A stretch of 64,000 bases of DNA from the NCBI GenBank assembly GCA_025558095.1, contig JAIVFI010000009.1, positions 62,001 to 126,000 of the forward strand. The letters run 5' to 3'. A program made the position numbers and the translations under genes. Shown here piece after piece: positions 9,912 to 46,097 of this stretch (the stretch's first letter is position 1; each line of letters starts with the position of its first letter). This DNA is from Hyaloraphidium curvatum SAG 235-1. Lineage: Eukaryota > Fungi > Monoblepharomycota. The notes below the pieces were generated by a model, which saw only the letters and a program-made list of their open reading frames with translations, did no database searches and was not told where the DNA came from.

Positions 9912-11551
9912 ATGGCGGAATTGGAGCACGCCGAACCCGGCGGCCCCGCCAAAGGCGCGCCGGCAGACCTCCTCTCCTTCCTGACCGGAGCCGAGCTCCT
10001 GTGCCTCTTGCCGGCACCCGTGGCTCCCCCCGCCGGAATCGGCGAAGACGACCCCAAGGACCCCGCGGCCGCCGCCCGGAACGAGCGTCCGCTGACCGCC
10101 GAGGCCGTGCGGGAGGCCGTTTCCGCTGCGGGCGACCCCCTGCTTGATTGGTTGACGCGCACTTCGCTCGCGCTGTCGCCCTACGCGTCGCGGGGCAGGC
10201 TGCGGATCACCGCCAGCCACGTCTACACCGTCTGCGTTATCGTGCCCTTTCTCTGGATAGCGGGGGTCCCGCACGGATTCGGCCGGAGGCAGTTGGCCGC
10301 CACGACCGCGGTGGCCGTCCTGGAATGCCTCGCCTATTCTCTTCTCGCCACCAACATCGGTTGGTTACTAGGGCGCCGAAGCGGACCGAAGTCAGCGCCG
10401 CCGAAGGAGCCGGACCCGGAATACGAGGGCCGGGCAAGGAAGGCATCTTTGCCTGCCGGGTTCTTCTCGGCCCCGACGCTCGACACGTGGGCGGAAGCCT
10501 CCTTTTGGCGCTACCTCATGCTCTGCCAATCAACCACGGACGGACTGTTCCTCGAGCACAGCGACCGGGACTGGTCCGACTGCTGCTGCCCGCGCGGCTC
10601 CTGCGCCGGAGCGATCCCGCGGCGCGCCGGCCTGGCCCGCATCGCGGGCATCTGCAGCTTCCTCGCCACCATCTTCTTCTCGTACGTCACGAGGATGTGG
10701 ACCCCGCTCGTCACGCTCGGCGGGCAGCTCTGGACATCCGCCTGGGCGATCGCCGGTGTACTTTGGATCGTGGTTTGGTGCAACAACCAGATCCCCTCGG
10801 CGTTCGGCGGCGTCGGCACGACGGACAACATCCCGGCAAGGGAGCTTGAACAGCGGCTCGCGCATCGCGCGGTGCGCCGTTCGCTCGAAGCCCTAGTTGG
10901 GCGGCTGAGGGACGAGGTGGCCGGGGCCGAGGGGAAGCATCCGGCGGGCTGCGAGAGCTGGTGCGCGGACCTGGTGCCCCTGCTCGCCAGCCGGTGGAAG
11001 CAGGATGTGGTGCTGCCCCAGTGGGCGGTGATGGCGGGGATCTTTTTTGGGACCGAGGCGATCGCAATCATCATCTTCGTGGTGGGTCGCCTCAAAGCCA
11101 TTGAAGGCGCCTCGATTCCGGATTCTCTGACCCCGACTCGCCGTCGCAGACCACAGGCAACTGCCTCCCCCTCTACACCTTCGCGCAGGTCCTCACCGGC
11201 CTCTTCGTCCTCATGTACGCCCTCCTCAACGCCTCCTTCGGCAACGCCCGCATCACCGGCACCGCCGCCCTCCTCCGCTCGGCCTCCCTCTCCCTCGCCC
11301 GCCTCGAGCTGGCCGTACCCGACCCCCATGCACCCCTGGCGAGACGTATCGCGGCGCACCGCGCGGTGCTCGGGGAGCTGCTCGAGGTGCACGTGGAGGG
11401 CGCGGGGGTGAGGCTGTTTGGGACGCGGGTGACGGCGGGGTTGGCGAGGAAGGTGGTGGCGGCAACGGCGACGGCGCTGTTTGCCGTGTGGACCGTGTTC
11501 CGCGCGCTGGGGGTGGTGCTGACGATGGAGCTCGTTTGCCCGGCGGCGTGA
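9912..11551 (+). CDS. Unknown 7-TM membrane protein, paralogue A (gustatory-receptor/DUF3537-like layout); intron 11082-11149
   Basis: The intron joins ORF 9912 in frame to the ORF ending at 11551. About 7 hydrophobic segments, CCCPRGSCAG, GNCLP, C-terminal VRLFGTRVT...FAVWTVFRALGVVLTMELVC. Confidence 0.8.
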
Positions 11552-14019
11552 GCGGTGTGTGCTTTGTGCTGGGAGAGCTGATATGTCGAGCTCGTGTAGG
11601 CAGCGAAAGTGGATGCCATCGCACGCTGGATCTAACGAATGACCATTGTCGCTACATGCTAAGGCAGTAGAATCAGAACGGACACTCGTCCCATCTCTCG
11701 CCATCGAGACGTCGCGTCGTTTCCTCGACCTCGCCCGCCTCCGTCCAGCACAGCTTCGTAAACGTAGACGAACAGCCGGAATGCAAGGTAACTGCGGTTC
11801 CCCCGCTTCTCGATGAATCCCTGGTCAGGGTCGGGGTCGAGCATTTCGTCTGTAGGGAATGTGGACCACCCATGGCCCACGCCGTCTTGGGCCAAGAGCG
11901 TTGGAGAAGAAATCGTGATCAGCGGGGGGATCTTGATTGGGCCCGCGAACCATGAATCCGACTTTGGCCCACTGGAGTGGGCAGAATGTCGTGCAAGCAG
12001 ACGGAGCAGGTGCTCCAGGAGGGCGCGGCGGCGGCCATAGGGGCAGAGTGGGGAGGGTGGAAGTGCGGCGGCGGTTTCGCAGCGAGCGATCACCGGTCTC
12101 TGATTTCAGAGGGACGTCAAACCGTCTTCATTCCCTATTGGAAGCTGACGAACGAAGGCAATTTATGTGAATTTGCATTGCGAGACCCGCTTTACCCGAT
12201 CGCTCCCTTGTACCCTCGCTGTTATTGCGTGATCAAACCCTTCCGATGCTGTCGCCGGAACGCCTCCGACCGTCGGATCCGCGGATGCGCTCCGTTGTGA
12301 TCTGGTGCGACCGAGGCGGCGGAAGATGCCACTACCCCCGCGACTCGACGATCGTCAAGGATGCCCCGATCGGGACTTCCCGAGCCCCATGGCGAGCCGC
12401 GGGTGCCCCAGATGCATCCCTTCCTGTCCGCGCGAGTAATGAAAGCCGGTGCTGTATAGCCCTGCATGACGGACGCCCCGCTCCGACCCCGCGACAGCAG
12501 CCAGGATGCGGAGCGTTCCAGCGGCGGATGCGCGGGAACGATCCTCCCCGTAGTGCTATGCCGCGGGTTCGACCGACGTCCCTCGCCGTCCTGCAAAGGG
12601 CTAGAAATCTAGCCCCCGCGGCCCGGATTGCAAGTGCCCGGGCATTCCAAGGGAGATCCCGCAGACGCTGCAAGGGCCGCGGGTGCGTCCCATCCGCGCC
12701 TGACGAACGCGCGGGTCCCGATCCCGTAGGTGCAAGTCCGCGAAACCATTGCCGCCGTACCGGGCGGCAACGATCCCTCGGCCCGCCCCACGGGTCCAGG
12801 CCCCGGTCCGTTGGGACATGCGAAGCTCGGGAGAGTCCGGTGGGCGGAGCTCAAACTCTGCGACCCCCGCGGCTGCGGAACTCCGGGGTGTTCGCGAAGA
12901 AGCTCCGTGTCGGAGCTTCTGCGCCGCGGTCCGAGGCCGCGGGTGCTCTGAGTGCGGTCCTGCCGCCTTGCACGAACCCGATCCGGAGCTTGCAGACGTG
13001 TCGGCGCGGAGCTCCCGCGGCTTTCTGACTTGAGAGCGGCACACCAAATTCGGTGCGCCGTCGGAAGCTTGCCGGCCGCGGGCCTTTCCCCATGGTACAG
13101 AGCCGACTATCAAATCCCCGCGGCGCTTCAGAAGCGGAGTACGGAAACCCCGGATCGGAGCTTCCGCAGGACCTCGGGACGCCGCGGGTGCGCTAGTGCC
13201 CCGTCCATGCCGGCGCCAAGACACGGAGCTCCCGCGGCGACAGTACCTGGTGAGCACGGCCTGTGATAAGTCGCGCCGAAGAGATCCTGCCTGCCGCGGG
13301 TGCCGGTCCCTCCCCGTCCTCCCCGTGGAGCACCGTCCGGCGAGAAGCCACCGGGCGTCCGGTCCGTCCGCGTTCGCTCTCCGTCCCGCTCCCCGGCGCG
13401 CCGTCCATGGGCGATGTGCCGGCACCGAGCACGGGTCAACGACCCCGTTCCGGGTCCGGGTCCGTACGGTGCGAGCAGCCGAACGTGGTGACGCGGCGGT
13501 CGTCCGCGGCCGGTTGACTTCCCGCACGGGACGGCGCGTCGCCCGCCGGCAGCGCGCCGTCCAGAGGAGAACAGCCCGACCTCGGTATGCTGCAATAGGG
13601 CGCGGTGTGCGGCGCGGGGTGTGCACTTGCGCGCGGGGGATGAGTCGGCCGCGCCGCGCAAACAACGCTGCCCGTCTGATCTCCCGAGAATGACAATTGC
13701 TGGAGCCAAGATCGAATATTCCATTCACATCATAGAGCCAAGGGCTTCAGAGATCGACCGCCCGGCGGCCAGGATGGCGCCTCGCGCCGGAAGACGCCGC
13801 CCGGGCTTCCCGATCCGTCCCCGCCTCCCCGGCGGCCACCCACCGGCGGATCCCTCCTTTTCCACCGACCTTGATGTTGGGTCGCCTTCCATCCTAGTTC
13901 TGGGCCCGGTTGGCGGGACTTTGGGGGGGGGGGCGGGCCTCTCTGGGGGATCGGGCGGCCTGACACCGCAGCCGCCTCTCTTCTTAGGGACCTCGGTTGG
14001 AAGCACCCCGCACGCCGCG

Positions 14020-16235
14020 ATGGCTTCGGAGCCTGCCGCGGGCATGCCGGCGGTGCGCGTGGCGGCGCCCGAGTCGGCCCCCGCGGACGCGGGCGCGCGG
14101 CGGCCGTCCGGGCAGGCCGGGCCATCGGGCGCCGCTGCCGGCCGGGCGCCGCCGCCGCTCGCCAAGGCGTCGTTCGACTTCTGGCTGGCGCTGCTGGGGG
14201 CGGCCGGGCTGCCGCCGCAGCGCGCCATCGACGTCGGCGTGGCGCTCGTCGAGCGCGGCTGGACGCCCGGCAACGCGGACGGGCTGCTGCGGGGCGACGG
14301 GCTCGCGCGCTGCGGGCTCGCCGCCGAGGACGAGCGCGTGCACGTGCAGAAGGCAATCACCGCCTACAGGCTGGACGCCGTCGAGAAGCAGCTCGAGGCG
14401 ATGGGCGTCGCGCACGGCGGGGCCCCCGCCGCCCCGCCCGCGGCCCCGGCTTCCCCGGTGGCCGCCTCCCCCGCCGGCCAGCAGGCACACGCTCCCCAAT
14501 CACAGCCCACCGGGCAGCCGCTGGCCACGCAGGCGGCCGGCCAGCCCCGTGCCGCGCCGCAGCGGGCTGCCACCGTCGGCGCAGCCCCGCCCGCGCCCCC
14601 CGCCCCCACCGTCCCGCCGCCCTCGCGGCCCGCCCGCCAGCGCACCACAACCGGCGGCTCCGTCGGCCAGCCCGCGCTCGCACCCCTGATCCCCGCCAAC
14701 GTCGGCGCCGCGCCCCCCGGGGACCAACCCCAGTCGGCCTCGGCCGTGCCCCCGGTCATGTTCGCCGTGCACAGCAGGAACCGCTCAGGTCCCTCGCCGC
14801 TGCCCAACACGGGGCCCGGGGTCGCGTCGCTGGCGCGCAAGGAGCTCAGCATGTCGAGCAACGTCATGTACGGCACGCCGCACGCCAAGTCCTTCACTAG
14901 GAGCAACTCGGGCGGCGCAGGTGGGTAGCCGGACCGCTTTCCTGTTCCCGTTCGGTCGCCAACTTCCGCTCCCTCGGCGTAGCAGGCGGCGAAGCCGCCG
15001 ACGCGGCGCAGGCCGGCCCCGCCTCGCTCAAAAACATCCAGCAGTCGTCGACCTACGACCCCGCGCAGGCCGCCACCGCCACGCACCCGTCCCAGGCCGG
15101 CCTCCGCCGCGGCTCCTCCTTCACCAACCCGCAAACCGGCGGCGCGCAGAACCCCTCGCCTCCCTCCCTCGCCCGCCAGGCCACCTCGACCCCCACCATC
15201 CCCCGCGTCCCCGCCCCCGGCGAACCGGCACCGGGCACCCCCCTCCGCCTCCTCACCGGCCACACCTCCCCCGTCACCTGCCTCTCGCTGCACCCCACCG
15301 ACCCCGCGCGCCTCTTTTCGGGCTCCAAGGCCCCCGAATCCGCCATCCTCGAGTGGTCCGTGGCCTACTCCCCCCTCGACAAGCCGCAGGAGCAGAACGG
15401 CCGCCTCGCGGCCGCCTACTCGGGCCACACCGACGCCGTCCGCGCCCTGGTGGTGTCCCCGGGGAGCAACAGGCTGTACTCGGCCTCGGACGACAAGACG
15501 GTCCGGGAGTGGGACATCGACCCCCGCCAGCCGGGCACGCGGGCCGCCCTCAGGGTGTTCAAGGGCCACCACGCGCCCGTGGGCTCGCTGTTCCTCGCGG
15601 CGTCGGGGGACCGGCTGTACACGGGGAGCGCGGACAAGACGGTCAGGGAGTGGGATTTGAAGACGGGCAAGGACCTGCGGAGCTTCAAGACGGCCGGGTT
15701 CCTCGACCGCGCGCACCAGGTCGTCCAGGTGGCCCTGTCGGCCGACGGGCGCAGCCTGTTTGCCGCGGTGGGCGACGGCATCGTGCGGTGGGACCTCTGG
15801 AGCGACGACAAGATCGGCAAGACCAAGATGGCCTCCGAGGTGGGCGAGCGCGAGACCACCTCCGGGGCGCAGCCCAACCCCACGGACTTTGCCCTGTCGC
15901 CGGACGGCCGGTACCTCGTCTCGTGCGCGGACGACGGCGCGGCGCGGGAGCACCTCGTGGCCACTGGCGTCACCACGCGGCTCTTCCGCGGGCACTCCGG
16001 GCCGCTGGCGCGGCTGCGGGTGTTCGAGAACAGGATGTTCACCTCGGGCAGCGACGGCACCGTGCGGGAATGGGACATGGCCACGGGGGAGTGCCGCGGG
16101 GTGCTGCGCACGGGTGGGCAGGGGGGGGATCTGGTGCTGGTGGTGTTTGGGAGCAGGAGGGAGGGGGGGGTGGTGGGGGAGGTGAGGAGGGTGTGGGCGG
16201 GGGTGGGGGAGGGGGTGAGGGAGTTTGCGGTGTGA
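14020..16235 (+). CDS. WD40-repeat protein with N-terminal SAM-like helical region and Pro/Ala-rich linker; intron 14921-14982
   Basis: GHTSPVTCL, GHTDAVRAL...SASDDKTVREWD, GHHAPV...GSADKTVREWD, GHSGPL...GSDGTVREWD. Confidence 0.85.
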
Positions 16236-16542
16236 TGCGGTTGGCTCGGTGCGAGTGTATTGGTATGTCGGATGAGAGGCTATCTTTCGTTGATCGGTTG
16301 CGTTGTGGCGCGATGGGGCGATGGGTGAAGGCGACGTCGATAGGCGGGGAGGGAGGAACGGATCGAAGTCTGCATGAGTTGCTTGCCATGCTTCTAAAAC
16401 ATCTCGCATGACAAAAGAAGGCTCAGCTAGCTTCGTTGGGACCTTGGTGACGGATGTGGCGCAGGCGGTCATCCGCAGGTCCCCTACACCCACTTTCCAC
16501 CCACCGGCAGGCCAGCGCCTTGACAAAGGCCTGGGCGTGCCG

Positions 16543-18828
16543 ATGGGCCTTCCGACGTTCGCCTCCGTTCTTTTGGTGGCGTGCGTGAACGTCCTCGCCG
16601 CCCCGGCCGCAGCAACGCCGCCCGCGCTCGTCTCCCGCGCCCCCAACCCGTGGGCGCCCATCGCGGCCATCGCCGCCCGCAACGAGTCGCTCGTGCCGTG
16701 GTCGGTCATCCGTTCCGGGTTCGACTCCCTGCCGCTGTCAGCGGACCGGCAGAGGTCGCTCGTCCGCTTCGTGCGCGACTCGATCGGCACGCTGCACGCC
16801 TTCTCGGAGCGCTCCGTCAGGCCGCCGGACCCGCGCATCGAGGTTTCCGTGGACATCTGGGCCGAGCTTACTGTCATCGCTGCACGCCGCTACGCTGCCG
16901 AATGGCGCCTGCAGGCCGACCTGGTCAGGTTGGTCAACCGCCTTGGAGATACCCACTCCTCCTACCGGCACACGTGCTTCGTCGGCGACGGGGGCCCGGA
17001 AAGGCCCAACGCCGACCCCATTCCAGTGTACTACTACCAACCGCTGAGCTTCGTGGCGGTGGTCACCGGAAACCCGAGGCGGCACATCGTGCTCGTGCAC
17101 TCACTACTCGACGTCGCCACCCCGAGGGGCACAGCACCCCTCCAGGACGTCTTCTTCCGCCGGACGACGTTCGTTGTATCACAGTCTGACCCCACCGCCC
17201 TCGCTGCGGTGCGGAGCGCCGGATCGTTGGCGCCGCTGGTCGGCGGCGAGCTTCTCTTTGTCAACGGACGCCGGGCGTTTGACTATTTCTTTGCCTACGC
17301 TCGGAGCGACAACATCGGCAGGCACAAGGACAAGCAGGCCACCCTGAACAGACTATTTGTCCGCCACGAGAAGGCCTACGGACGGCACACGACCGGCAGT
17401 TGGGAGAACCGCGGAAGCAACCACCTCCCGGAATCCGACTCGGTGCGATACACGGTGCGGCTGGCCCGCGGAGGCAAGGTCACCTTCGTGGTGCCATGGC
17501 TGGTGGACGGGTTCATTCTGAACGGCCTGCCGCGGTTCCAGTCTCCTGCACTGTACCTCCACGCCTGCCTGACCTTTCCGCGAACGCAAGCCCGCTTACC
17601 GGATCCGCGTGCAGGCCTGGTCGCAGCACCGAGAGCCGGCTCCACGAACGCAACGGCTAGGCCGCCAGGCTACTTCAAGACGGAAAAGGAGGGCAACCAG
17701 ATGCGCCTCCCCGACACGGCGCCCAACTCCAACCTTCCCCCGCCGGCCGCGACTGAATGGTTCCTCGAGGCGACCATCCTCGACAAAGAGAACCTGTACA
17801 TGGCCGTCATGGCCCGCCGCCGATCCGGCCGCATCGTCGCCCGCGCCGGCGTGATACAGTTCCCCGGGGGCATGGAACCCGATCCCTACTTTGCGGACAT
17901 GCACGACTTCGCGCCCATGTTCGCGTCGGCCTTCCGCAACCTCACGAGGCGAGTGGAGCGGAGCAACCCCACGAAGCTCCTCGTGGACGTGACGGGCAAC
18001 GGCGGCGGCTACCCGTGCTTCACGCTCGCGGTGCTCTACTTCTTCTTCCCCCGCGCGCGGGCGGACCCGCCGGTGCTCGATCTCCGCTCGTCGCCGTGGA
18101 TGCAGGCGACCGCGGCCGCCATCGAACGGGGCAAGCCCCCGCGCACGTCGGGCCTGTGGGACTACCGCAGCTACGGCGACCTTGCCCGCAAGGGGCAGTA
18201 CATGGCGGATCAGGCGGCGCACCCGGACGGCCGGTGGATCCGCAGGACGGCCGTCCGCTCGGTGCCGGGCACCCGTCGCACGCTCAACGTGACGCAGACC
18301 GTGACCTACCAGTGCTTCGCGCCCGACAATCCCGACAGCCGCTCGATCGACCGGGCGTGGTTCGGCAGGAACGTGCCCGCGACCGCCGCTTTCCTGGCGA
18401 ACAAGGTCGATCCGAAAAGGGTCGTGGTTTTCGGGGACGGCAACTGCGGGAGCGCCTGCGCGGTGTTCCTCCGCGCGATGCGCCGCGCGGGCGCGAAGGC
18501 CGTCGTCAGCGGCGGCGCCCTGCAGCGCACCGATTTCATGCCGGACGCCTTCCAGGGCGGCTTCGTGAGCGACCTGTCCGAGCTGCTCGCCGCCTCCCCC
18601 GTCGGCTCTCTGGGCCCCGCGCCGCCGGACGGCGCGGCCAGCGTGCGGCTGGTGCCCGTCGAGGCGCTCGATTGGGCGGACGGGAAGACGCCGCTCGAGT
18701 TCGTGTACAGCCCGGCGGACGCGAGGGTGCACTACGAGGTGCCGGGCGTGGGCTTGGAACAGGCGAGAGCGGCGATCGCGCTGCCGAACCTGTGGGCGAG
18801 GGCCATGGACATGGTGTGGGGTGAGTGA
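16543..18828 (+). CDS. Secreted S41-family (CPAF/tail-specific-like) serine peptidase, fungal type; intronless
   Basis: Signal peptide MGLPTFASVLLVACVNVLA; RLGDTHSSY, LLVDVTGNGGG, GDGNCGSACAVF (catalytic Ser motif), PLEFVYSPAD. Confidence 0.85.
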   Translation: MGLPTFASVLLVACVNVLAAPAAATPPALVSRAPNPWAPIAAIAARNESLVPWSVIRSGFDSLPLSADRQRSLVRFVRDSIGTLHAFSERSVRPPDPRIEVSVDIWAELTVIAARRYAAEWRLQADLVRLVNRLGDTHSSYRHTCFVGDGGPERPNADPIPVYYYQPLSFVAVVTGNPRRHIVLVHSLLDVATPRGTAPLQDVFFRRTTFVVSQSDPTALAAVRSAGSLAPLVGGELLFVNGRRAFDYFFAYARSDNIGRHKDKQATLNRLFVRHEKAYGRHTTGSWENRGSNHLPESDSVRYTVRLARGGKVTFVVPWLVDGFILNGLPRFQSPALYLHACLTFPRTQARLPDPRAGLVAAPRAGSTNATARPPGYFKTEKEGNQMRLPDTAPNSNLPPPAATEWFLEATILDKENLYMAVMARRRSGRIVARAGVIQFPGGMEPDPYFADMHDFAPMFASAFRNLTRRVERSNPTKLLVDVTGNGGGYPCFTLAVLYFFFPRARADPPVLDLRSSPWMQATAAAIERGKPPRTSGLWDYRSYGDLARKGQYMADQAAHPDGRWIRRTAVRSVPGTRRTLNVTQTVTYQCFAPDNPDSRSIDRAWFGRNVPATAAFLANKVDPKRVVVFGDGNCGSACAVFLRAMRRAGAKAVVSGGALQRTDFMPDAFQGGFVSDLSELLAASPVGSLGPAPPDGAASVRLVPVEALDWADGKTPLEFVYSPADARVHYEVPGVGLEQARAAIALPNLWARAMDMVWGE

Positions 18829-19190
18829 CAGGCGTGTTAAAGGAAGAGTATACTGCACTCGTTTCTCCTCTTGCTTGTCCCCGTCCAGCGGAGTTCAGTC
18901 CAACGCCTTCGCCTTCGCGAGCAGGGCCGACATCCACCGAGGTTGCGAGTGACACACCGATGGCCGGGCGGATGCGGGCTCGGTCGGGGAAACGCCGTGA
19001 GGGCTCGAAAGGTAGCTCGCGTGGGGCAGAAATCAAGAGGCCTATGGTGCGATAGAGATCGCAAGCTGTCGTGGCGGAGATCCGGGTCACCCGACATGTA
19101 CTATGCCAAGGCGAACATTGATTAATTGATTGATTGATTGAAGGAGGAGCATGGGAAGAATGTCCCTTCTGATTCCCGCACTACACGTCA

Positions 19191-21409
19191 TCAGACCGAA
19201 ATTGAGTACAAAGTGACATAGCCCTGCAGAAAGACGATCCTCGACCCGGAAAAGAGCCACGGATCGGGCACGAAGTCCAGCACCTTCCTGTCCCCTGACG
19301 ACGGCGACCAGACGTGGATCCCCCACGCCGTCCCGGCGTACGCCACAAGCCCACTAGTAGCTTTCACGTCGCATTCAAAGCTCGGAGTCGACTGCAGCGT
19401 GACCGCCGGCCCGCCGGCCACGGATGCTTTGACAACCACCGTGTCGGGCGTGGGGGTCTCACACCAGGCCAGCACCCCGTCAGCGAGCGCGAACGCCGTC
19501 GCGTTGATCGACACCGTTTCCTGCCGGCCTTCGGGTGCAGGCATGACCACCAATGAGTGGCCATCACCCGCCTTCCACGCGACGCGCTGGCCGTCCGTGC
19601 CGACCGCGGGCCGGCCGACGGCGACGTCGTCCGAGATCCTCGTCGTGGCGTTGGTTGCGGAAGACGATCGCAGGAGCACGGTGCGGGTCGGCGCACCGAA
19701 GCAGGTCCACGACCTCTGCGGGGTGATGTATAGCTCCACGTCGGTGCCGTTGGGGTAAAAGTCGAACTCAAAGCTGGGCTCCAGCCCTTCGGGACCCGGC
19801 ATCGTCAAAATCCCGGAAGCTGGGTCGTACGCCGTGAACCCTGCCGACGCGCAGCCCCGCACGCTCGCCGCCACAACCCTCCCGGGCTTGGCTTTGGGTG
19901 TGAGTTCGCCGTAGTCGTCCCCAGCGGGCTTGATCGGGTTGGCCTCCGTCAGGTTCGCCACGCCGCCCGAGGCGTCCCACCGGAGCACGCACGACGCGAG
20001 GGTGCAGTTGGGCCCCCGGGCAACGGAGGTGTAGGCCGCGCCGCCTGCAAAGGACCAGCCCAGGCCCGTGGAATCGATCGCGATGGTGGATCCCTGCAGG
20101 TCGACCGAGGCGCCGGTCGCCAGGTCGAGGACGTGGTTCGTCGGCTTGCCCCCAGGGTCTTCGGCAAAATAGGGAACCTTGGTTCCGTCCACGGCGCGCA
20201 GGTAGGAGGTTGCGTGCGGCAGCTTTCCGTACGGCGCATAGGCGAGCTGCGGCGAGGAGGCGACCTGGATGCTGGCCTCGACCGACCCGAAGGCGCCTGT
20301 CGAGTCTTGGGCAAAGACGATGAAATTGGCAAGGCCAGGGAAAGAAGGGTCGAGGTTGATCTGCTTGGAGAACGGCCCGGCCGAGGTCGCGATGAGCACG
20401 TTTCCGTATCCGGGGACCGAGACCTCGACCGAGACGATGCGCGTCCCGCGCGCCCGGGCGGATGCGGTGCCCGAGACGGTCACGGAGCCGTAGTAGATCC
20501 GGCCGGCCTCGGGCGACGTGAGCTGCACGACGGGCGGCGGTCCGCTGAGGTAGAAGTGGTGCCGGGACTCCCTGGCAAGGCCGCGCTTGTCCCGGATGCG
20601 CAGCCTGGCCGTGTGGTTGCCGGACGAGACCGCCTGCAGCTCAGCCATTGCGTCGCTGTCCAACTTGGTCCGGGTCCCGTTGGGCGGGGAGCCGGCGTAG
20701 ATGAGGGGTACGCTCCGGCCGTCGACCCACAGGGCGAGCGAGGAGATGCCGCCAGCGGCGTACGCGTCGACGAAAATCGTCACCGGCCGCCGTTCCGCTT
20801 ACTGCTCTGTATCGTCCCCTACGTCGGCCCACCCCGCCGAGACTTGGGTGGAGAAAGGGAGGTTGCTGAGGTTGAACCTCCTCGTGGCGACGGTCCGCAG
20901 GCGGCCAAGCGGAGGCCCCACGCGGGCCCATACGGTGTGGATTCCGTCCACAAAATCCCGCGAGTCCCATTCGGTGGATGGCTCGGCCGCCGTCGCCGAG
21001 CCGACCTCCGCGCCGTCGATAAAGTACGAAACCGACGTGCCCTGCTCGGGCGGCGGGACCACCGACAGCAAGACGGTGCCCGAGACGGGCTCCGCCATGC
21101 CAAAGGTGACGAAGCTGGTCGGGGAGGGCCGCCGCGTGGTCGTCCGTCTGCAGGTGGACGTCCTGCGCCGCGACGTCGTCCGGCGGAGCCCAAGCTGCCG
21201 GGCTTGCAGCGGCGGCGCAAAGCTGTCCATATACGAGCGAGGTCATCGTGGGGTGCTGCGGCGGGCAACGGCTCGACGGCCGTGCACGGAAGAGCCGGGA
21301 GGAGAACGGTGCACGCGAAGAACGCGGCGACCGCGGTGCAGAGAGCGGCGGTCGCCCAGGCTGGGCGCCATCCGGTTGTGTTGAAATGCTGTCCAGAAGA
21401 TGTGCGCAT
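19191..21409 (-). pseudogene. Disrupted copy of the secreted Ig(Big_7-like)/beta-rich protein at 28222-30441
   Basis: Colinear with the paralogue, but 2 extra nt near 21230 shift the frame after the signal peptide, and an in-frame TAA lies at 20799-20801 (DDTEQ*AERRPVTIF). Confidence 0.75.
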
Positions 21410-25950: not shown

Positions 25951-26238
25951 GACTTGCCGCCATGGGCTGCAAACGCTGGGAACGAGCGGACTTGCTGATC
26001 GCTTCCTTCTCCTCCCTTCCCCGAGTCCGTTAGCGGCTGCTGAACGTATGTGGCTTCGGAGTGCCCCTGCGGGCACCTCGGTCGTCCGTGATGGTCCCGT
26101 ATTCCTGGATAAACGCAGTTGACATCGCATAACCCTTCCTCTCCTCCCTCTCTCCACAATTATATGGTACGGACAATGACGCCACACAACATGCCCGAAC
26201 AATGCCCCGGCCGCCAAAGGTCCAAGCGACGGCAAAAA

Positions 26239-27585: not shown

Positions 27586-28024
27586 CGCGTCGAGGGCGTC
27601 TGGCTCGGGTCACGTCGGTCTCCCGGTCGTGAGGGATCTGAGGGATCTCCGATTTCAGGACCAAGAGACCGAGACCCAGCCAGTCTGCGTCCCCCAGCCC
27701 GGTTCTGCACCTCTCTTTCGGCGGCTCTTTCGGCGGCGCCAAACCCGTTTTGCCTCTCCGACACGCCGCTTTGCTCAAGGCACGTCGAGACCCGACTCAT
27801 CCCGTGGGAGCAGGAACCCCTCGCGGCCTCGGGCGACAAACCTCGCACAACACACTACAATCTGCACCAAATGTACGCGAATCGTCATTGAGTAGCACAT
27901 CTGACCCGCTATCGATCGCACGCCAGCCCATCCGCGCACCCGGCGCCCGCCGGTACCCGCCACCCCTTCTTCATCGGCACTCCAAGAAAACCATCACGAT
28001 AGCCTGTTGTAGCCCCCGGGCCGG

Positions 28025-28163
28025 TCATTGTCGTCGCCAAGGACTCGGCCGGAAGCTACGGCAGCGGGCTCGGCCATCCGGTCGGGGACGGGCGGCGGGT
28101 GGTCGTACGCCTGCACATGCCGGTGATCGTCCTGCGCCGCGAAGTCGTCCGGCGGAGCCCGAG
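28025..28163. repeat. Scrambled gene-derived fragments: a direct copy of about 29297-29340 joined to an inverted copy of about 28435-28541
   Basis: 28025-28066 resembles tcattatcatcgccaaggactcggccggaggctacgccagcg. 28067-28163 is the reverse complement of the RQLGLRRTTS...GMAE coding segment. Confidence 0.85.
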
Positions 28164-28221
28164 TGATCGAGTCACATCCAACGCAATCGTCGTAACCGAC
28201 GACAATCTCTCTTCTGAAGCA

Positions 28222-30441
28222 ATGCGAACATATTTTGGACAGTTTCCCAACATCTCCCAACGGCGCCCAGGCCATGCGGGCGTCACCCTCTGCGCCGCGA
28301 GCGCCGCCCTCCTCGCGACTGTCTTCCTCGTTCCCCCTTCCCCGTGCACAGCCCTGCAGCAGTTCACTACCGCGGCGACCCACTATGACTCGCTTCGCTT
28401 GAACAGCTTTGCGCCACCGGTGGAAGCCCGGCAGCTTGGGCTCCGCCGGACGACTTCGCGGCGCAGGACGAGCACCGGCAAGCGTACGACCACCCGCCGC
28501 CCGTCCCCGACCGGCTTCATCGCCCTCGGCATGGCCGAGCCCGTTTCGGGCTACGTGGCGCTGTCGGTGCTCCCGGCACTCGAGCCGGGGTTCCCTGTCG
28601 ATTTCTACGTCGACGGCGAGGCGGTTGACGCCGGATACCCGGACGGCGCCAGATGGAACACGTTGCCCTTCCCGGACGGCGTGCACACGGTCCGCGCCCG
28701 CGTCGAGCTGCTCGACGGGCGCGTGCTGGAGCTCGCACAGCCGCGGAGGGTCAACGTCAGCAACCTCCTGTTCTCAACCACGATCCAAACAACCTGGGAC
28801 GAGGAGACTGCGGACCCAGGCGGCCGGCGCGACGTCCGGATCGACATCTCCCCCTACGCTGCCGCCGGCATCTCGTCGATGGTCCTTTGGGTGGACGGGC
28901 GGAGCGTCACCCTGGATTACCATGGGCGGAAGCCGGACGGCCGCAAGACTACGCTGGGCAGCGATCCCAGTGCTGCGGTGCACTCGTGCACCTACGGCAA
29001 CCACACTGCCAGGCTGCGCATCAGCGATGCGCGGGGCCGGACCCGGGAGTCAAGACACTTCTTCTACGTTCCGCCGCCGCCGCCGGTGGTGTCGATGACC
29101 TCTCCCGAGGACGGACGCATCTACCACAGGTCGCTGACTGTCTCTGGCACAGCAAGGGCGCGAGCCCGGGGTGCCCGCATCACTTCGGTCGAGATTAGCG
29201 TCAATAGGTCCTCGATCATGCTCGTCTCCACCGCCGGAGGCCCGTTCTCCAAACTGCTCAACCTGTCCCTTGTGGTCCCCGGGCCGGAGTTCGACATCAT
29301 TATCATCGCCAAGGACTCGGCCGGAGGCTACGCCAGCGCGTCGCGGACGGTCAGGGTCGCATCCTCGCCGCAGCTTGCCTACGCACCGTACGTCAAGCTG
29401 CCACACACCTCCACCGTGCGCATGCACGCCCTGGACGGCACCAAGCTGCTCTACTCCGCAGAGGACTCGGATGGCGGGTCGACGACCCACGTGCACGATC
29501 TCGCGACGGGCTCCACCGTTGCCCTCCAGGGATCCGCGGCCTGGTCGTACGACGGTCAGGCGTGGTCGTTCGCTGGCGACGCGACCTACATCACCGTGTA
29601 CCGCGGCCGGGACTGCGCCTCCGCGTCCTGCGTGCTCCGCTGGGATGCCTCTGGCGCGCTCACCAACCTGACCGCGGCCAACCCTCTCAAGCCCGGGGGG
29701 GGCGAGTACGGCGAACAGGACCCCCACGCCAAGCCCGAAAAGGTGGTCTCAACCAGCTTGTTGCGCTGCGCCTTGCAGTCCTTTACAGCGTACGACCCCG
29801 CGTCGGGATCGTTCGAAGTGATCCCCGGGCCCCGCGGGCTCGAGCCCCGCATTCAGTTCGACTTCTACACCAACGGCACAGGCCTGGATCTCTTCTATTC
29901 GCCGCAGAGGAACTGGATGGCCTGCGCACAGTGGGGTGTCGAGCTCATGCACTGGTCGTCAGGCACCAACGCCACCACGCTGGTCTCTGACGACGTGGCA
30001 CCGGGTCCACCAGGCGTACGCACCGACGGGAGGAGGGTCGCGTGGATCGCCGGTGACAGGCGGTCCCTGGTAGTGATGCCCGCACCCGAGGGCCCACAGG
30101 AAATCGTGTCGCGCAACGTCAGCTCGTTCGCGCTGGAGGACGGGGTGCTCGCATGGTGCGAGACTCCCACATCGGATTCCATTGTGATCAAGGCATCTGC
30201 CGAGGGTCCGGCGGTGACGCTGCAGTCGCGGCCGACCAGCGAGGGCGACAACGATTGGTGCGACGTGAGGGCAGCCGGGGGCCTGGTGGCGCACGCGGGG
30301 CCCGGGGTTGGGATCGCGGTCTGGTCGCCGGCGGAGGGCAACAGGAAGGTGCTCGATTTCTTGCCGCCGCAGTGGTTCTTTTCCGGATCGAGGCTCGTCT
30401 TCCGCGTGGGCGACAAGACGCTGTATTCGATTCCTGTGTAA
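28222..30441 (+). CDS. Secreted protein with polybasic Thr-rich linker, 2-3 bacterial-type Ig (Big_7-like) domains and a C-terminal beta-propeller-like region; intronless
   Basis: Signal-like segment, RRTTSRRRTST, VSGYVALSV...VDFYVDG...WNT..FPDGVHTVRARV, PPVVSMTSPEDG...LTVSGTA. Confidence 0.8.
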   Translation: MRTYFGQFPNISQRRPGHAGVTLCAASAALLATVFLVPPSPCTALQQFTTAATHYDSLRLNSFAPPVEARQLGLRRTTSRRRTSTGKRTTTRRPSPTGFIALGMAEPVSGYVALSVLPALEPGFPVDFYVDGEAVDAGYPDGARWNTLPFPDGVHTVRARVELLDGRVLELAQPRRVNVSNLLFSTTIQTTWDEETADPGGRRDVRIDISPYAAAGISSMVLWVDGRSVTLDYHGRKPDGRKTTLGSDPSAAVHSCTYGNHTARLRISDARGRTRESRHFFYVPPPPPVVSMTSPEDGRIYHRSLTVSGTARARARGARITSVEISVNRSSIMLVSTAGGPFSKLLNLSLVVPGPEFDIIIIAKDSAGGYASASRTVRVASSPQLAYAPYVKLPHTSTVRMHALDGTKLLYSAEDSDGGSTTHVHDLATGSTVALQGSAAWSYDGQAWSFAGDATYITVYRGRDCASASCVLRWDASGALTNLTAANPLKPGGGEYGEQDPHAKPEKVVSTSLLRCALQSFTAYDPASGSFEVIPGPRGLEPRIQFDFYTNGTGLDLFYSPQRNWMACAQWGVELMHWSSGTNATTLVSDDVAPGPPGVRTDGRRVAWIAGDRRSLVVMPAPEGPQEIVSRNVSSFALEDGVLAWCETPTSDSIVIKASAEGPAVTLQSRPTSEGDNDWCDVRAAGGLVAHAGPGVGIAVWSPAEGNRKVLDFLPPQWFFSGSRLVFRVGDKTLYSIPV

Positions 30442-30477
30442 TCCACGTCCCGCCTACTGAGCCGTTTAACGATGCTC

Positions 30478-32133
30478 TCACGCCGTCAGCCGGCACGCCA
30501 AGTCCATGGTCACGCCGACGCCGAGAGCCCTGAGGACAGTCCACAATCCGACGAGGATCGAGAACCCCGCAACCACGATACCCCTGAGAGTCGCAAACGT
30601 CATGGGCACACCAAAGAACCCGGCCTTGAACGCGTCGAGATCCGTGAATGAGAGGAGTAGGTCCCGGTGCGACAGGATCGTGTGCCGGAGCAGCGCGCGG
30701 GAAGCGGGGAGGCGGCCGGCCAGCACGGAGAGCTCTTGTGCGCAGGCGCGGTACTGCGCCGTCGCGTGGCGCGACTGCAGGTTCTTGTACGCGTACGACA
30801 GGGCGAGGTAGATCATTACATGCAGGGTGATGGCAAAGTCGCCAATCAGCAACGCAGGCAGGCAGTTTCCGACGGCGATGCTGACGACGGCTGCGACGGA
30901 GTGGGTGCACAGGGCGCCCACGCCGAGGAGGCGCAGTGGCGCGTTCGAGTCGAGGCTGCTGCGCCAGTCGGCGAGAAGCTGCCCGTGCAGGCCGATGTAG
31001 GGTTCCTTAGGGATACAGGATGCGAGGTTGGCGTCATTAATGTTTGTGTCGCCGTCTGTTGGGTGATCCGCAGCGCAAGTTAGGCGGTCTACGAGGTTGC
31101 GCAAGCATATGGCCACTGCACGGTGCCGTAAGCGGAGTTCCAGAGCGTAGACACTTGGATTCGGGGGCCCTCCGGGAAAGTACGTGTTTATCTCGGTGGC
31201 CACAAACAAGAGAACCATCACTGGTACTAAAAGCGCCGTTGCCACCGTTGAAGTCCAGACAAAGGGTCCGAGGGTGACAGCAGCAGACCAAAATGTCGCG
31301 ACGATCAAGGTGAAGTTGGTCAAGCACATGTGCACGATGAGGAAAGCCAGCATCGAGAGTCTGCTCTGCTTGACAAAAGGTCCGGTGCAATCGGGACACG
31401 AGCAGAGTTTCTCGGTCGCGTTGTCGTCAAGCAAACGCGATGAATCCGGGCGACGGCCGGCAGCAATGCTGCTCTTCATATCACCCTCCAGAAGCTGAAG
31501 GTATCGAACCAGGCCCGAGTATCCCTGGGCATCGAGGTGATCGAGGCTTTCAGGCGACCGTATGGGGCCCATGTGTTCTGGATCATCGTCCCTAGCAGCT
31601 TTGCGGCGATCTGCAGCCGCAGCGCGTCTGGCACGTTCCGTTGGAGGCGCAAAGAGACCGACCACGTAGAGCAAGTCCCAGCCCAGTTTGTGGAGCACGA
31701 AGACGACCTGACCAGCGGCGAGATTCCGGATCCCGAAGGTCCCGGGCCCCAAAACCCAAAGAAATACGTACAGAGCCTGCGAACACGCCTCCACCAGGGC
31801 CCCAATCCACGGCTTTGAGCCGAAGTTCTTGTGCAGGACCATCTCGAGTGCCAACATTGAGCCCATGGGGTTTGCCGCGGAATCCAGCGCGGCCCGGAAC
31901 GCGTCCAGTGTGAGCGGACGAGAAGCACGCCCCGCAGCAGCCGCGGCGTTGGCACCCGTCGGCCACAGCCACGCCGGGACGTCTTCGGGCAGCGGCGCCG
32001 CGTTGCCCCCGAGCGAAGGAAACAGCGCAAGTTGTTCAGCCGGCGAAAACGGGTACGGCCGCGCGCCGTCCGGTGCCTCCGCGCTATTCGCCACGTCGGG
32101 CTGATCCATATTGCTCATTGTCGTCCGCGACAT
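30478..32133 (-). CDS. Unknown 7-TM membrane protein, paralogue B; intronless
   Basis: 551-aa ORF with about 7 TM segments, LCSCPDCTG, GNCLP, KAGFFGVPMT...LWTVLRALGVGVTMDLAC. Confidence 0.8.
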   Translation of the reverse strand: MSRTTMSNMDQPDVANSAEAPDGARPYPFSPAEQLALFPSLGGNAAPLPEDVPAWLWPTGANAAAAAGRASRPLTLDAFRAALDSAANPMGSMLALEMVLHKNFGSKPWIGALVEACSQALYVFLWVLGPGTFGIRNLAAGQVVFVLHKLGWDLLYVVGLFAPPTERARRAAAADRRKAARDDDPEHMGPIRSPESLDHLDAQGYSGLVRYLQLLEGDMKSSIAAGRRPDSSRLLDDNATEKLCSCPDCTGPFVKQSRLSMLAFLIVHMCLTNFTLIVATFWSAAVTLGPFVWTSTVATALLVPVMVLLFVATEINTYFPGGPPNPSVYALELRLRHRAVAICLRNLVDRLTCAADHPTDGDTNINDANLASCIPKEPYIGLHGQLLADWRSSLDSNAPLRLLGVGALCTHSVAAVVSIAVGNCLPALLIGDFAITLHVMIYLALSYAYKNLQSRHATAQYRACAQELSVLAGRLPASRALLRHTILSHRDLLLSFTDLDAFKAGFFGVPMTFATLRGIVVAGFSILVGLWTVLRALGVGVTMDLACRLTA

Positions 32134-32216
32134 GTCGTTCCACGGTTGGGAGGCAGTTGCGCGGTCTGGTTGCGGGTCATCACTCGACGCTGCCCTCCCG
32201 GAACGAGCTCACAGCA

Positions 32217-33779
32217 ATGGAATTGGCATCGCTCCCGCCGCTGCTCCTCGCCGTGCTCGCGGCTGCCCTGGCGGCCCTCTGGTTTGTGCGCACGCGCCCG
32301 GGTCAGTCGCGCCTGCCCCCCGGCCCGCGCCCCGAGAGCTGGCTCCGCGGAAACCGGCTGCCCCCCACAATGCCGTGGCTCCAGTTCGAGAAGTGGACGC
32401 GCGAGTTCGGTGACGTGTTCTCGGTGCGGTTCGGCCGCACCAGGCTCTTTGTCCTCGGTCGCGCCCCGTCGGCCCACGAAGTTCTCGAGAAGCGCGCCGC
32501 GGCGTCCGCGGACCGCCCGCGGCTCATCATGGCCGGCGAACTCATCTCGGACAACAAGAGGATGCTCATCCTGCCGCATGGGGACCGCTGGCGCCTGTTC
32601 CGCAAGGTCGTGCACGAGTTTCTCTCCGAAAAGGCGTCCAAGATGTACGAGCCCATCCAGGAACGCGAGGCGCGGATCGCGATGCTCAACCTGGGCCGCT
32701 CGGAGCCGACCAAGGGCGCGTTCCAAGCCATCTTCAAGCGGTACGCCGCGTCGACCATCATGCAAGTCACGTACGACTACGAGATCACCTCGCTCGCGGA
32801 CCCGCTGCTCAAGGCCGTGGAGGAGAGGCTGACGGCCATGGCCACGTGGATCCGGCCGGGGCAGAGCACGCTGGACAATTGGCCGGTGCTCATGTACCTG
32901 CCCACCTTCATGAACCCGTGGAAGAAGGAGGGGCTTAGGCTGCGCGCGCTGGAGCAAAAGCTGTTCCTTGGCGAGTTTCTGAAAGTGCGCGAACGCGTTG
33001 GCGAGGGCAAGTGCAACCCGTGCTTCGTCTCCGCGATCCAGGCCAAGCAATCGGAGCTCGGCTTCACGGACCTGGAATGCTCTTACATCGCGGGAAGCAT
33101 GTTTGGTGCCGGCTCCGACACGACTGCCAGCGCCCTCGCCATCTTCGTCCTTGCGTGCCTGCACCACCCGGACGTGCTCAAGAAGATGCAGGCAGAGGTC
33201 GACGCCGTATGCGGCTCTCACCGTCTCCCCACCTTTGCCGAAGCCCCCTCGATGCCCTACGTCAACGCTTCCGTCAAGGAGACCCTGCGGTGGCGCCCCG
33301 TCAGCGCGGGCGGGTTCCAGCACCGGCTCACTGAGGACGTAGACTACGGGGGCTACCTTCTCCCGGCGGGCTCCACCGTCGTTGGGCCGCACTGGAGCAT
33401 CAGCCTGGACGAGACCGAGTACCCGGATCCGCACGCATTCAAGCCGGAGCGGTTCCTCCCCGCAAACCAGCCCGTCTGGTTCGCGCCCCGGGTTGGCTCC
33501 GTGGCCTTCGGCTTCGGAAGGAGGATCTGCCCCGGTCTGCACGTGGCCATGCGCTCCCTGTTCATCAACCTGGCCTGCATGGCGTGGTGCTTTGACATCT
33601 TGCCGGCGGGACCGGATCCCGTGGACACGTTTGCCTTCACCAGCGCGGCGAATTCGCACCCCCTGCCCTTTGCGGCCGTGTTCAGGTTCAGGGACGATCG
33701 GAGGAGGGAGGTGCTGGAGGCCGAGTGCCGCGGGACGGGGGAGCTGGAGCGGATCAGGGAGAGGGAGGCCGGGGGCTGA
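32217..33779 (+). CDS. Cytochrome P450 (microsomal); intronless
   Basis: N-terminal anchor plus PPGP hinge, AGSDTT (I-helix), ETLR, PERF, FGFGRRICPG heme motif. Confidence 0.97.
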   Translation: MELASLPPLLLAVLAAALAALWFVRTRPGQSRLPPGPRPESWLRGNRLPPTMPWLQFEKWTREFGDVFSVRFGRTRLFVLGRAPSAHEVLEKRAAASADRPRLIMAGELISDNKRMLILPHGDRWRLFRKVVHEFLSEKASKMYEPIQEREARIAMLNLGRSEPTKGAFQAIFKRYAASTIMQVTYDYEITSLADPLLKAVEERLTAMATWIRPGQSTLDNWPVLMYLPTFMNPWKKEGLRLRALEQKLFLGEFLKVRERVGEGKCNPCFVSAIQAKQSELGFTDLECSYIAGSMFGAGSDTTASALAIFVLACLHHPDVLKKMQAEVDAVCGSHRLPTFAEAPSMPYVNASVKETLRWRPVSAGGFQHRLTEDVDYGGYLLPAGSTVVGPHWSISLDETEYPDPHAFKPERFLPANQPVWFAPRVGSVAFGFGRRICPGLHVAMRSLFINLACMAWCFDILPAGPDPVDTFAFTSAANSHPLPFAAVFRFRDDRRREVLEAECRGTGELERIREREAGG

Positions 33780-34020
33780 TATCGCAGGATGTCCGTGCCT
33801 AGACGGGCAAGCTCAGATGTCCTACCATTGAATCCATGTGGATTGCAACAGATTCCGGCCAGAAGAGCTGAACCGCCATGATCCGAGGCCCGCCTGTCTC
33901 CCGCGCCTGTTGAGATGCACAGAAGCTTCCACGATTCCAACTTCCGCGACAAGCACCTCAGCGTGCTCGGCATTGTCCCTTCCGGAGAGCGCAGGTCAAA
34001 GCTTTCACCGCCCTGCAAAC

Positions 34021-35769
34021 ATGAAGGACGCCGAGGATTCCGAGGACGCGGCGCCGGGCGACTTTTCCCTTCTCCCCGAACGCATTGTCGGCCGCCCCGA
34101 CGCGGACTACGCGGCGGCAATCCGCAACCGGCTCGGGCCACCGGCCGTGGACCCGCGGCACAGGTCGAGGGCGGACCCGCAGTGCGCGCGGGAGGCGCGG
34201 CTGCCCCTGCCCACGGCGAAGGACAGGCCGTTGCTGGGCCGGTGGCGGCCACCGCTGTCGGCGGCCCAGGCGGCGGACATTTTCGCGGCAAATGGGCTGC
34301 CTGCGCTCGCGGGCCTGTGCCGTTTTCTGCTCGCGGCTTCCGTGGCGGAGAAAACGGTGGCTGCGTTCGTCGTGGGGACCGCGACGATGCTGGCCACCGT
34401 CCCGGCGTTGCTCGCTGCGATCGGCTTGTCGCGCCCACCCGGCCCTGTCGGCCCTTTTGCCACGGCATGCGCCGGCATCCTCGTAGGGTACTACGTGTCT
34501 ATCGTCTCGTTCGCGCTTCCGCACCACCGTGTTCTCGCCCCGCGGCGGTTCAAGTCGCCCGCCGATCCGCAACTGGCGGGCACGCCGGCGGTAATCGCGT
34601 GGTATTGGGCTCGCGCTATTACCGACAGGGCCGCATTGCTGCGGCACTGCCCCCCCAAGGACGACTACGCGGGGATGGAGGAGCTATTCGTACCCGAGGA
34701 GGGCCCCAAACTCGCGGACGCCGCCGCCGTCCGGTCCTCGGAATGCCCATGCCCACAGTGCTTCGGGCTCTTTGCTGGGAATGGCTGGCTGTTAGTTGGC
34801 TGGTTCATTCTGCACCACTTCGTTGTCGTGTCTGGCATTTTGGTTGCGATGCTATGCCTTTCCTTCTGGGACCTTTGGGGAAGCCCGGGAAGCCCTCTGC
34901 TCTCACGGCCGTGGGTCGCGGCGTGTTTCGCCATCCATGTCGTGGGCATCGTTGCTACCAATTTCGTTGCGGCCGCCAGGGAAAACCATGTCATGGTTCT
35001 CGCCCAGGCCCAGATCATTCGGAGGGTGCAGATCCGTGCATCGCGCGCCGCTTGCGACGCGTTTGTTCGCGAGTGTGCGGAACGCGTACGGATGTCCATT
35101 ACTGACCGCGGAACCAGCCCCGGCTTTGGAGAGCTGGTCCCTCAACCCAAACCAGCGACGGAAGCATGCAACGGCCTCAAGGCTACTAATGAGGAGCAGC
35201 TTGGCGGACCTTCACCGGATTGGGCGCTCCCGCAGCTCTATGCACGCGTGGCCTCCGATGTCAAGCAGTACGGGCGCTCACGGACCCTCTATACTGTGTA
35301 CCTACACTTGCCCCTTGGAACTGCCGGAATCTCCCTGCTTGCCGCCTTGCTATGCTCCTTCTCCTTCGGCGGCTCCTGCTTCCCCGCATGGGGCTTTGCC
35401 ATCCCCTTCCTCGGTGTCTTCGTCGCCGCGGGCAACCTCGCGGACATGGCTGTCATCAACGCTGCGTCGGCTGCGGTCGCCGATGTGTACCGCGAGGCCG
35501 GCGATGCCGTCGCCTCCCTCGCCGCGGACCTGCCTTCCGGCCCCGGATCCGCCGTGCTTGCTGCCGACCTGGAACGACACCGCATGGAGCTGGATCGCAT
35601 CGCGGATGCGTTGCTGCGGGGCACTGCCAAGGCCAAGTTCCTCGGTTTCGCCGTCACGGGGGCGTCGCTAATCAACATCGCCGTAGCGGTGATCACCGTC
35701 GGCGCGACACTGTTCCGGGCTTTCGGGCTGAGGCTCCAGCTGGGGACGTACTGCACCCCAGTCGAATAG
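34021..35769 (+). CDS. Unknown 7-TM membrane protein, paralogue C; intronless
   Basis: About 7 TM segments, ECPCPQCFG, GSCFP, KAKFLGFAVT...ATLFRAFGLRLQLGTYC. Confidence 0.78.
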   Translation: MKDAEDSEDAAPGDFSLLPERIVGRPDADYAAAIRNRLGPPAVDPRHRSRADPQCAREARLPLPTAKDRPLLGRWRPPLSAAQAADIFAANGLPALAGLCRFLLAASVAEKTVAAFVVGTATMLATVPALLAAIGLSRPPGPVGPFATACAGILVGYYVSIVSFALPHHRVLAPRRFKSPADPQLAGTPAVIAWYWARAITDRAALLRHCPPKDDYAGMEELFVPEEGPKLADAAAVRSSECPCPQCFGLFAGNGWLLVGWFILHHFVVVSGILVAMLCLSFWDLWGSPGSPLLSRPWVAACFAIHVVGIVATNFVAAARENHVMVLAQAQIIRRVQIRASRAACDAFVRECAERVRMSITDRGTSPGFGELVPQPKPATEACNGLKATNEEQLGGPSPDWALPQLYARVASDVKQYGRSRTLYTVYLHLPLGTAGISLLAALLCSFSFGGSCFPAWGFAIPFLGVFVAAGNLADMAVINAASAAVADVYREAGDAVASLAADLPSGPGSAVLAADLERHRMELDRIADALLRGTAKAKFLGFAVTGASLINIAVAVITVGATLFRAFGLRLQLGTYCTPVE

Positions 35770-46063: not shown

Positions 46064-46097
46064 TGCCGCCCGCCTACCCGCCAATCCCCGGGAGGCC

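Follow-up and report, generated by a model that had tools for sequence, protein, structure and literature searches.

The window analysed here is a stretch of 64,000 nucleotides (positions 62,001 to 126,000 of contig JAIVFI010000009.1, forward strand) from Hyaloraphidium curvatum SAG 235-1, a monoblepharidomycete and early-diverging fungus. Three of its genes, termed genes 1, 2 and 3 in order of position, are proposed, with a probability of roughly 0.55, to be members of a very large and previously undescribed family of seven-helix proteins that has the fold and membrane orientation of the seven-transmembrane ion channels (7TMICs), among them the odorant and gustatory receptors (ORs and GRs) of insects. 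An initial annotation, prepared from the letters of the window without knowledge of their source, had described three divergent paralogues with one layout in an early-diverging fungus, and it was right about both the genes and the host. The components of the proposal differ in strength: structure models make a 7TMIC-type fold very probable, and an actual ligand-gated channel or chemosensory role, argued by analogy, falls slightly short of an even chance. Large 7TMIC repertoires are known only from animals, chiefly arthropods. If the family does consist of several hundred functional ligand-gated channels, this would be the first large repertoire of chemoreceptor channels outside animals, and repertoire expansion would not be an animal invention. 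The three genes are arranged as follows.

9912..11081, + strand: gene 1 exon 1, 390 codons, with the N-terminal region, transmembrane (TM) segments TM1-TM4, the H/Cys motif (EHSDRDWSDCCCPRGSC), the IL2 inner loop and the greater part of TM5
11082..11149, + strand: gene 1 intron, 68 nt, GTGGGT...CGCAG, GT..AG, phase 0
11150..11551, + strand: gene 1 exon 2, 133 codons and stop, with the TM5-TM6 turn, TM6, Asn, TM7a, the VRLFGTRVT linker, TM7b and the C-terminal Cys-Pro
30478..32133, - strand: gene 2, single exon, 551 aa and stop, the folded member
34021..35769, + strand: gene 3, single exon, 582 aa and stop counted from the first ATG, the most divergent of the three, with its own subfamily

The extents given initially for genes 2 and 3 stand as single open reading frames (ORFs), and it is only for gene 1 that one ORF from 9912 to 11551 has to be replaced by a model with an intron at 11082-11149. 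The reading frame changes between ORFs 9912-11411 and 11213-11551, the two homologous ORFs being offset by a +2 shift. Removal of the intron joins ...AIAIIIFV to TTGNCLPLY... and gives back the invariant GxC(I/L)P turn of the family (GNCLP), and the family profile runs on without a gap across the junction, with exon 1 ending at profile position 366 and exon 2 starting at 367. Gene 1 is read as two exons separated by a 68-nt intron because of this frame shift, the restored turn and the contiguous profile match. In the one sequencing run that contains this DNA, short and patchy contigs span 9551-10527 and none lies between 10570 and 11948, the region that includes the intron. The two exons of gene 1 were analysed singly throughout, and not as a joined protein.

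The relationship among the three genes was assessed by pairwise BLASTP and with a hidden Markov model (HMM) of the family built from 96 other members, the window genes being left out. Exon 1 of gene 1 is 30% identical to gene 2 (E 2e-20) and exon 2 matches the C-terminus of gene 2 at E 7e-12, while genes 2 and 3 align colinearly at 22% identity (E 5e-5). With this HMM, gene 2 reaches 355 bits and gene 3 reaches 115 bits (E 2e-34); in gene 1, exon 1 (positions 12-366) scores 217 bits and exon 2 (positions 367-498) scores 110 bits. By these alignment scores, genes 1, 2 and 3 are intact paralogues beyond chance, and a six-frame HMM scan of the 64 kb found exactly these three and no fourth member. 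Each of them heads a separate subfamily, and the closest relatives are on other contigs; among the matches listed, the nearest paralogues are C19:90296 for gene 1 (61%), C24:93958 for gene 2 (57%) and C27:595151 for gene 3 (55%). The window genes are therefore not local tandem duplicates. Tandem pairs of family genes a few kb apart are found elsewhere in the genome, at C19:88527-93541, C26:548493-561781, C29:111747-118498 and C39:391478-395099; the pairs on C19, C26 and C29, the three for which it was measured, have an amino-acid identity of 71-79%.

Layout, conservation and motif counts were taken from an alignment of 98 family members (A2). Hydropathy yields seven hydrophobic TM segments per gene, arranged as the hairpins 1-2, 3-4 and 5-6 followed by a single TM7, and the helices of the AlphaFold2 (AF2) models agree with seven TMs for genes 2 and 3. 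No signal-like hydrophobic segment is seen at the N-terminus by hydropathy, as the first reading had already stated. The paired TMs and long loops noted there are borne out by the loop lengths, the inner loops having means of 76 (IL1), 77 (IL2) and 68 residues (IL3) versus 11, 13 and 4 residues for the outer loops EL1, EL2 and EL3. In addition, lysines and arginines number 11.6 on the membrane flanks of the N-terminal side versus 2.0 on the short loops and C tail, and the N-terminal side is the richer one in 98/98 members. Under the positive-inside rule, this charge bias would put the N-terminus and long loops in the cytoplasm and the C-terminus outside, which is the inverse of G protein-coupled receptors (GPCRs). 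The expected topology of seven TMs with the N-terminus inside is thus what hydropathy, AF2 and charge bias returned, and the outcomes that had been named in advance as grounds for abandoning the idea (an outside N-terminus, a TM count other than seven, no structural match to 7TM channels) are not what was found. A GPCR-like family with its N-terminus outside, like most fungal 7-TM sensors, would share the seven helices and the large family size, but it is hardly credible given the charge bias in all 98 members, the absence of any GPCR from the 50 best structural matches of each model, and the absence of a GPCR Pfam match in family members. That reading was rejected for its wrong topology and for want of a structural match.

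Conservation is distributed unevenly along these proteins. Per column, it is highest in the TM5-TM6 turn (3.04 bits), followed by TM7b (2.60 bits), and lowest in TM1-TM4 (1.25-1.39 bits); the C tail and the His/Cys motif are also high. In 7TMICs, the pore and the anchor are reported as the conserved parts (10.1101/2023.08.30.555482), and the pattern of the family fits that of 7TMICs because TM7b is high and TM1-TM4 are low. Three of the conserved elements can be placed in gene 2.

31384..31446, - strand: pre-TM3 Cys motif (LLDDNATEKLCSCPDC), residues 230-250, predicted cytoplasmic; family consensus LLxHxxxDxLCPCx2-4C
30856..30867, - strand: TM5-TM6 outer turn NCLP, residues 423-426, four residues, with the invariant Cys424
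30523..30597, - strand: TM7b, residues 513-537, the most conserved helix of the family

The first of these, written as the pattern (H/D)x3Dx2CxCx2-4C, is located at the foot of TM3; C244 and C249 (gene 2 numbering) are invariant in the 98 members, and at least 90% of them retain C246, H237 and D241. In gene 2, the columns of the His and the Asp are occupied by D and E, and its closest kin also carry Asp in place of His. The Asn after TM6, which the initial annotation had called conserved, is present without exception in the 98 members (gene 2: N451). Likewise, the quoted segments VRLFGTRVT, AGFFGVPMT and AKFLGFAVT are present as described and match the consensus ahead of TM7b, (R/K)A(R/K)FLGFxVT, in which the Gly occurs in 95/98. 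TM7b carries the signature RTxxVTxxTVxVGLWSxLRG; the Arg at its outer end (R535 of gene 2, window 30529-30531) is found in 90/98 members and replaced by Lys in 7, and a second near-invariant Arg, R517, marks its inner end. Additional invariant or nearly invariant features are RLxxRA after TM4, YxxLH in IL2 and a Cys near the C-terminus, usually as Cys-Pro, that is invariant in the family; in addition, an N-terminal region of ~90 aa contains a conserved FSxxEWLALFP motif.

The strongest pointer to 7TMICs comes from structure prediction. Using the 98-sequence alignment, AF2 produced a confident model for gene 2 (predicted local distance difference test, pLDDT, 87.8; predicted template modelling score, pTM, 0.88) and a fair one for gene 3 (pLDDT 76.2, pTM 0.78). 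In the gene 2 model, TM5 (378-422, 45 residues) and TM6 (427-474, 48 residues) are each about twice as long as the membrane is thick; the gene 3 model likewise has TM5 and TM6 helices of about 45-48 residues, and TM4-TM6 are extended far into the predicted cytoplasm. TM7 is split into a predicted cytoplasmic TM7a (477-495) and TM7b (513-536) by a non-helical, conserved 17-residue linker, the gene 3 model being split likewise, and a beta bridge connects the TM5-TM6 turn with residues 540-542 of the C tail. The check that had been suggested, AF2 followed by Foldseek, places OR/GR entries at the top for both genes: they occupy 12/12 top rows for gene 2 (E 0.1-0.4) and 19/21 top rows for gene 3 (best E 3.8e-3, probability 1.00). 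In a structural comparison with 48,161 chains, all eight solved 7TMIC clusters align with the models over ~300-350 residues, and TM7b of gene 2 aligns with the last helix of the OR/GR chains (model range ends 533-537), the one that lines the pore in the insect channels. GPCR, rhodopsin and AdipoR/PAQR chains are missing from the 50 best matches of both models. In a search of the ESM Atlas by shape, a single row has a template modelling score (TM-score) above 0.5; it is a cluster of arthropod membrane proteins that has no Pfam family and aligns over 372 residues. These matches could in principle be due to convergence or generic packing of long helices, in which case the family would form a new 7-TM fold class unrelated to 7TMICs. 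This is improbable, since only the eight solved 7TMIC clusters fill the top ranks among the 48,161 chains, for two paralogues that are 21% identical; furthermore, topology, loop asymmetry, split TM7 and conservation pattern agree independently, and language-model embeddings point to DUF3537 and 7tm_7.

Several observations weigh against assigning the family to the 7TMICs or to chemoreception. None of the 98 members matches Pfam 7tm_6, 7tm_7, Trehalose_recp or DUF3537 even at E <= 10, the family profile found no OR/GR chain among the PDB sequences, and the GR TM7 motif (T/S)Yhhhhh(Q/K/E)(F/L/M) is absent from all 98 (regular expression, last 90 residues), a motif that is considered diagnostic but not definitive for GRs (PMC7746228). 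The initial view that the link is architectural only is consistent with these results. Structural similarity is also weak in absolute terms, with Foldseek E-values of 0.004-0.4 and TM-scores of 0.25-0.41, and the gene 2 and gene 3 models share one multiple sequence alignment and are not fully independent. R535 at the outer end of TM7b would be odd for a cation pore if it faces the lumen. Finally, H. curvatum, a planktonic aquatic fungus, is non-flagellate, which makes the use of a huge chemoreceptor set puzzling.

More generally, no Pfam family gives a consistent match among the 98 members. The named clusters that come nearest by language-model features, computed from sequence only, include those of DUF3537, 7tm_7 and Trehalose_recp, and with the low recognition score of the tool this serves as a lead only. 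A canonical GR-like protein (GRL; 7tm_7) or DUF3537 protein had no match in the H. curvatum genome in a search in which the control genomes gave none either. In the literature searched, no published link of Hyaloraphidium with gustatory or odorant receptors, 7TMICs or DUF3537 was found; a structure-based 7TMIC screen (Himmel et al., 2023) is without mention of Hyaloraphidium and did not recover chytrid 7TMICs (10.1101/2023.08.30.555482). Fungal GRLs have been described as one protein in each of two chytrid Spizellomyces species, SpunGRL1 and SpalGRL1 (Benton et al., 2020, PMC7746228), and were identified through BLAST matches with DUF3537 or with GRLs of animals (PMC7746228).

The comparison with known families reveals both shared and distinct traits. 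Like the GRLs, the family agrees with four of five published screening criteria (PMC7746228), having no significant similarity elsewhere, seven TMs, a predicted intracellular N-terminus and inner loops longer than the outer ones; like SpunGRL1 and SpalGRL1, it resides in an early-diverging fungus. Unlike the GRLs, for which a length of 350-500 aa is the criterion (PMC7746228), its proteins are longer (~500-580 aa), lack such BLAST similarity and are present in hundreds of copies instead of one per chytrid species. The family is likewise very large compared with plant DUF3537 (PF12056), which forms small families of 4-12 per plant (PMC7746228), and has no HMM match to PF12056. In comparison to the insect ORs and GRs (Orco, MhOR5, AaegOR10, AgamOR28, BmGr9, Gr43a and Gr64a), sequence or profile similarity and TYhhhhhQF are lacking, and the proteins exceed these receptors in length by ~100-150 residues, their N-terminal region being conserved and IL1 measuring 76 residues. 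Further differences are an invariant cytoplasmic His/Asp-Cys3 motif, the invariant Cys residues of the C tail and of the TM5-TM6 turn on the outer side, and the conserved 17-residue TM7a-TM7b linker together with an invariant Arg at both TM7b ends; for tetramer and conductance, the correspondence with insect receptors is by analogy. Taken with the models, the family probably has the 7TMIC fold and topology and constitutes a very remote branch of the superfamily, as distinct from a demonstrated sequence homologue.

The size of the family was estimated in two ways. A phmmer search with gene 2 against 1.84 billion representative proteins returned 229 matches at E <= 1e-3 and 120 at E <= 1e-10, and a hand count over five search lists gives at least ~160 distinct genomic loci in the H. 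curvatum genome. The searches of that genome score the best 79-106 of 279-887 first-look candidates, which makes the counts of loci lower bounds; in the profile search, the last full-length row among the matches listed still has an E-value of 1e-115. Copies are mostly intronless, are spread over all contigs of the 32-Mb genome and encode proteins annotated as 'hypothetical protein' (NCBI locus tags DFJ74DRAFT_*). Sequence-based annotation thus overlooks possibly one of the larger gene families of this genome.

Among eight of the closest paralogue pairs, the synonymous divergence (dS) is 0.5-1.3 and the ratio of nonsynonymous to synonymous divergence (dN/dS) is 0.20-0.34. Judged by these rates, the duplicates are old and under purifying selection. 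Of the original wording 'expanded, fast-evolving', the first part holds, with hundreds of members, and the second finds no support, the family being deeply diverged but constrained at such dN/dS values. The same figures bear on the idea that the genes are cargo or relics of mobile elements, or decaying pseudogenes, and that their copy number reflects selfish spread. This would account for hundreds of mostly intronless copies over all contigs and for the matches that contain one in-frame stop, but is highly improbable: the closest pairs are old and constrained, most copies have an uninterrupted reading frame from end to end, members are 19-57% identical to one another, which is not repeat-like, and gene 2 is flanked by a P450 gene and by an ordinary-looking Big_7 ORF whose stop is 36 nt away, so that element termini would not fit in. 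The notion of transposon cargo or a pseudogene swarm was rejected on account of these old, constrained duplicates in tight, ordinary gene contexts.

A new aspect is that H. curvatum is not the only source of family members, which also occur in one further sequencing run and in metagenomes of the Joint Genome Institute (JGI). When 30 matches were looked up, 24 proved to be H. curvatum hypothetical proteins and 6 came from elsewhere. Logan run SRR26194948 contains four family genes on three contigs, and two JGI metagenome contigs carry members, the second being P0080.

L031 (SRR26194948), 76-1748: family gene
L033 (SRR26194948), 2076-3797 and 3805-5653: two family genes in tandem
L034 (SRR26194948), 1160-2870: family gene
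L032 (JGI metagenome contig 3300043314), 1982-3471: family gene

The external contigs have 53-55% GC versus ~65% in the window, and among the matches listed no H. curvatum copy is more than 36% identical to the member from the JGI metagenome. A symplekin gene on one Logan contig shows 42-54% identity to its H. curvatum counterpart. Both external members that were aligned (L031 and L032) keep all hallmark residues. From these comparisons of sequence, the family is present, in multiple copies, in at least one other, fairly distant eukaryote. In three of the four genes from the Logan run, the reading frame is interrupted around HMM positions 235-259, where a conserved intron may lie. On L034, the family gene is arranged tail-to-tail with a myo-inositol oxygenase (MIOX) gene at 2960-4969. 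A MIOX-like ORF also occurs in the window at 44030-47008 (-), ~9 kb from gene 3, and coincidence is possible.

If the genes encode 7TMICs, a mechanism can be outlined by analogy with the insect OR/GR channels. The subunits would assemble, probably as tetramers, via a cytoplasmic anchor bundle formed by extensions of TM4-TM7a, with TM7b lining the central pore. A ligand pocket, different from paralogue to paralogue, would be made up of the outer halves of TM1-TM4 and TM6, which are variable, and the family as a whole would represent a diversified repertoire of ligand-gated channels for external or internal chemicals. A four-copy complex prediction of gene 2 residues 322-551, run without an alignment, gave a score of 0.10 and a mark of 0.32, values that speak neither for nor against assembly. 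The cytoplasmic His/Asp and three-Cys motif at the foot of TM3 is a candidate metal site or S-acylation site. The invariant Cys of the TM5-TM6 turn and the C-terminal Cys, both predicted to be on the outer side, are candidates for a disulfide that staples the outer end of TM7b. The Arg at R535 might confer another ion selectivity or face away from the pore.

The same features can be read in another way, namely that the proteins have the 7TMIC fold without being chemosensory and act as a channel or scaffold for ion homeostasis, in cell-surface or self/non-self recognition, or in organelles. A common fold does not show function, and non-animal 7TMICs (DUF3537, PHTF and protist GRLs) are without a shown chemosensory role (PMC7746228; 10.1101/2023.08.30.555482). 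Moreover, the His/Cys motif, the FSxxEWLALFP N-terminal region and the outer Cys are modules not found in the OR/GR descriptions consulted, and a cation pore would not typically have an invariant Arg such as R535 at its end. This alternative is nevertheless considered unlikely, as hundreds of diverged but maintained paralogues with variable TM1-TM4 and conserved TM7b follow the pattern of a receptor repertoire and not that of housekeeping channels. The chemoreceptor interpretation can be extended to a more tentative, and on balance doubtful, scenario in which a cryptic 7TMIC lineage expanded independently in H. curvatum and at least one relative, giving rise to a repertoire as large as those of insects, with several hundred ligand-gated channels that are functional and have regulatory modules of their own, namely the cytoplasmic His/Cys site for metal or acylation and an outer disulfide that clamps the pore helix. 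Should the family of hundreds consist of 7TMICs, ideas about where such repertoires originated, and how many times, would have to be revised. It would then provide a compact microbial system in which to study the stimuli of non-animal 7TMICs and to test if these proteins act as channels, and naturally diverse sequences with conserved Cys/His features for structure-function work.

The surroundings of genes 2 and 3 are densely packed. A cytochrome P450 gene (Pfam p450, E 6e-73) at 32073-33779 (+) lies between them with short spacers, divergent from gene 2 and ~240 nt upstream of the gene 3 start. A Big_7 ('bacterial Ig') domain is detected in two long ORFs, 28099-30441 (+) and 19191-20783 (-), with E-values of 4e-7 and 8e-6, respectively; the former stops 36 nt from the gene 2 stop codon, and the two may encode paralogous secreted or surface proteins. 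Downstream of gene 3, an F-box-like domain (E 1e-8) is present in ORF 37977-39248 (+). Two parts of the window, 14001-16000 and 44001-50000, reach 72-76% GC versus a background of ~65%, and the long overlapping ORFs on both strands of these stretches are probably artefacts of composition.

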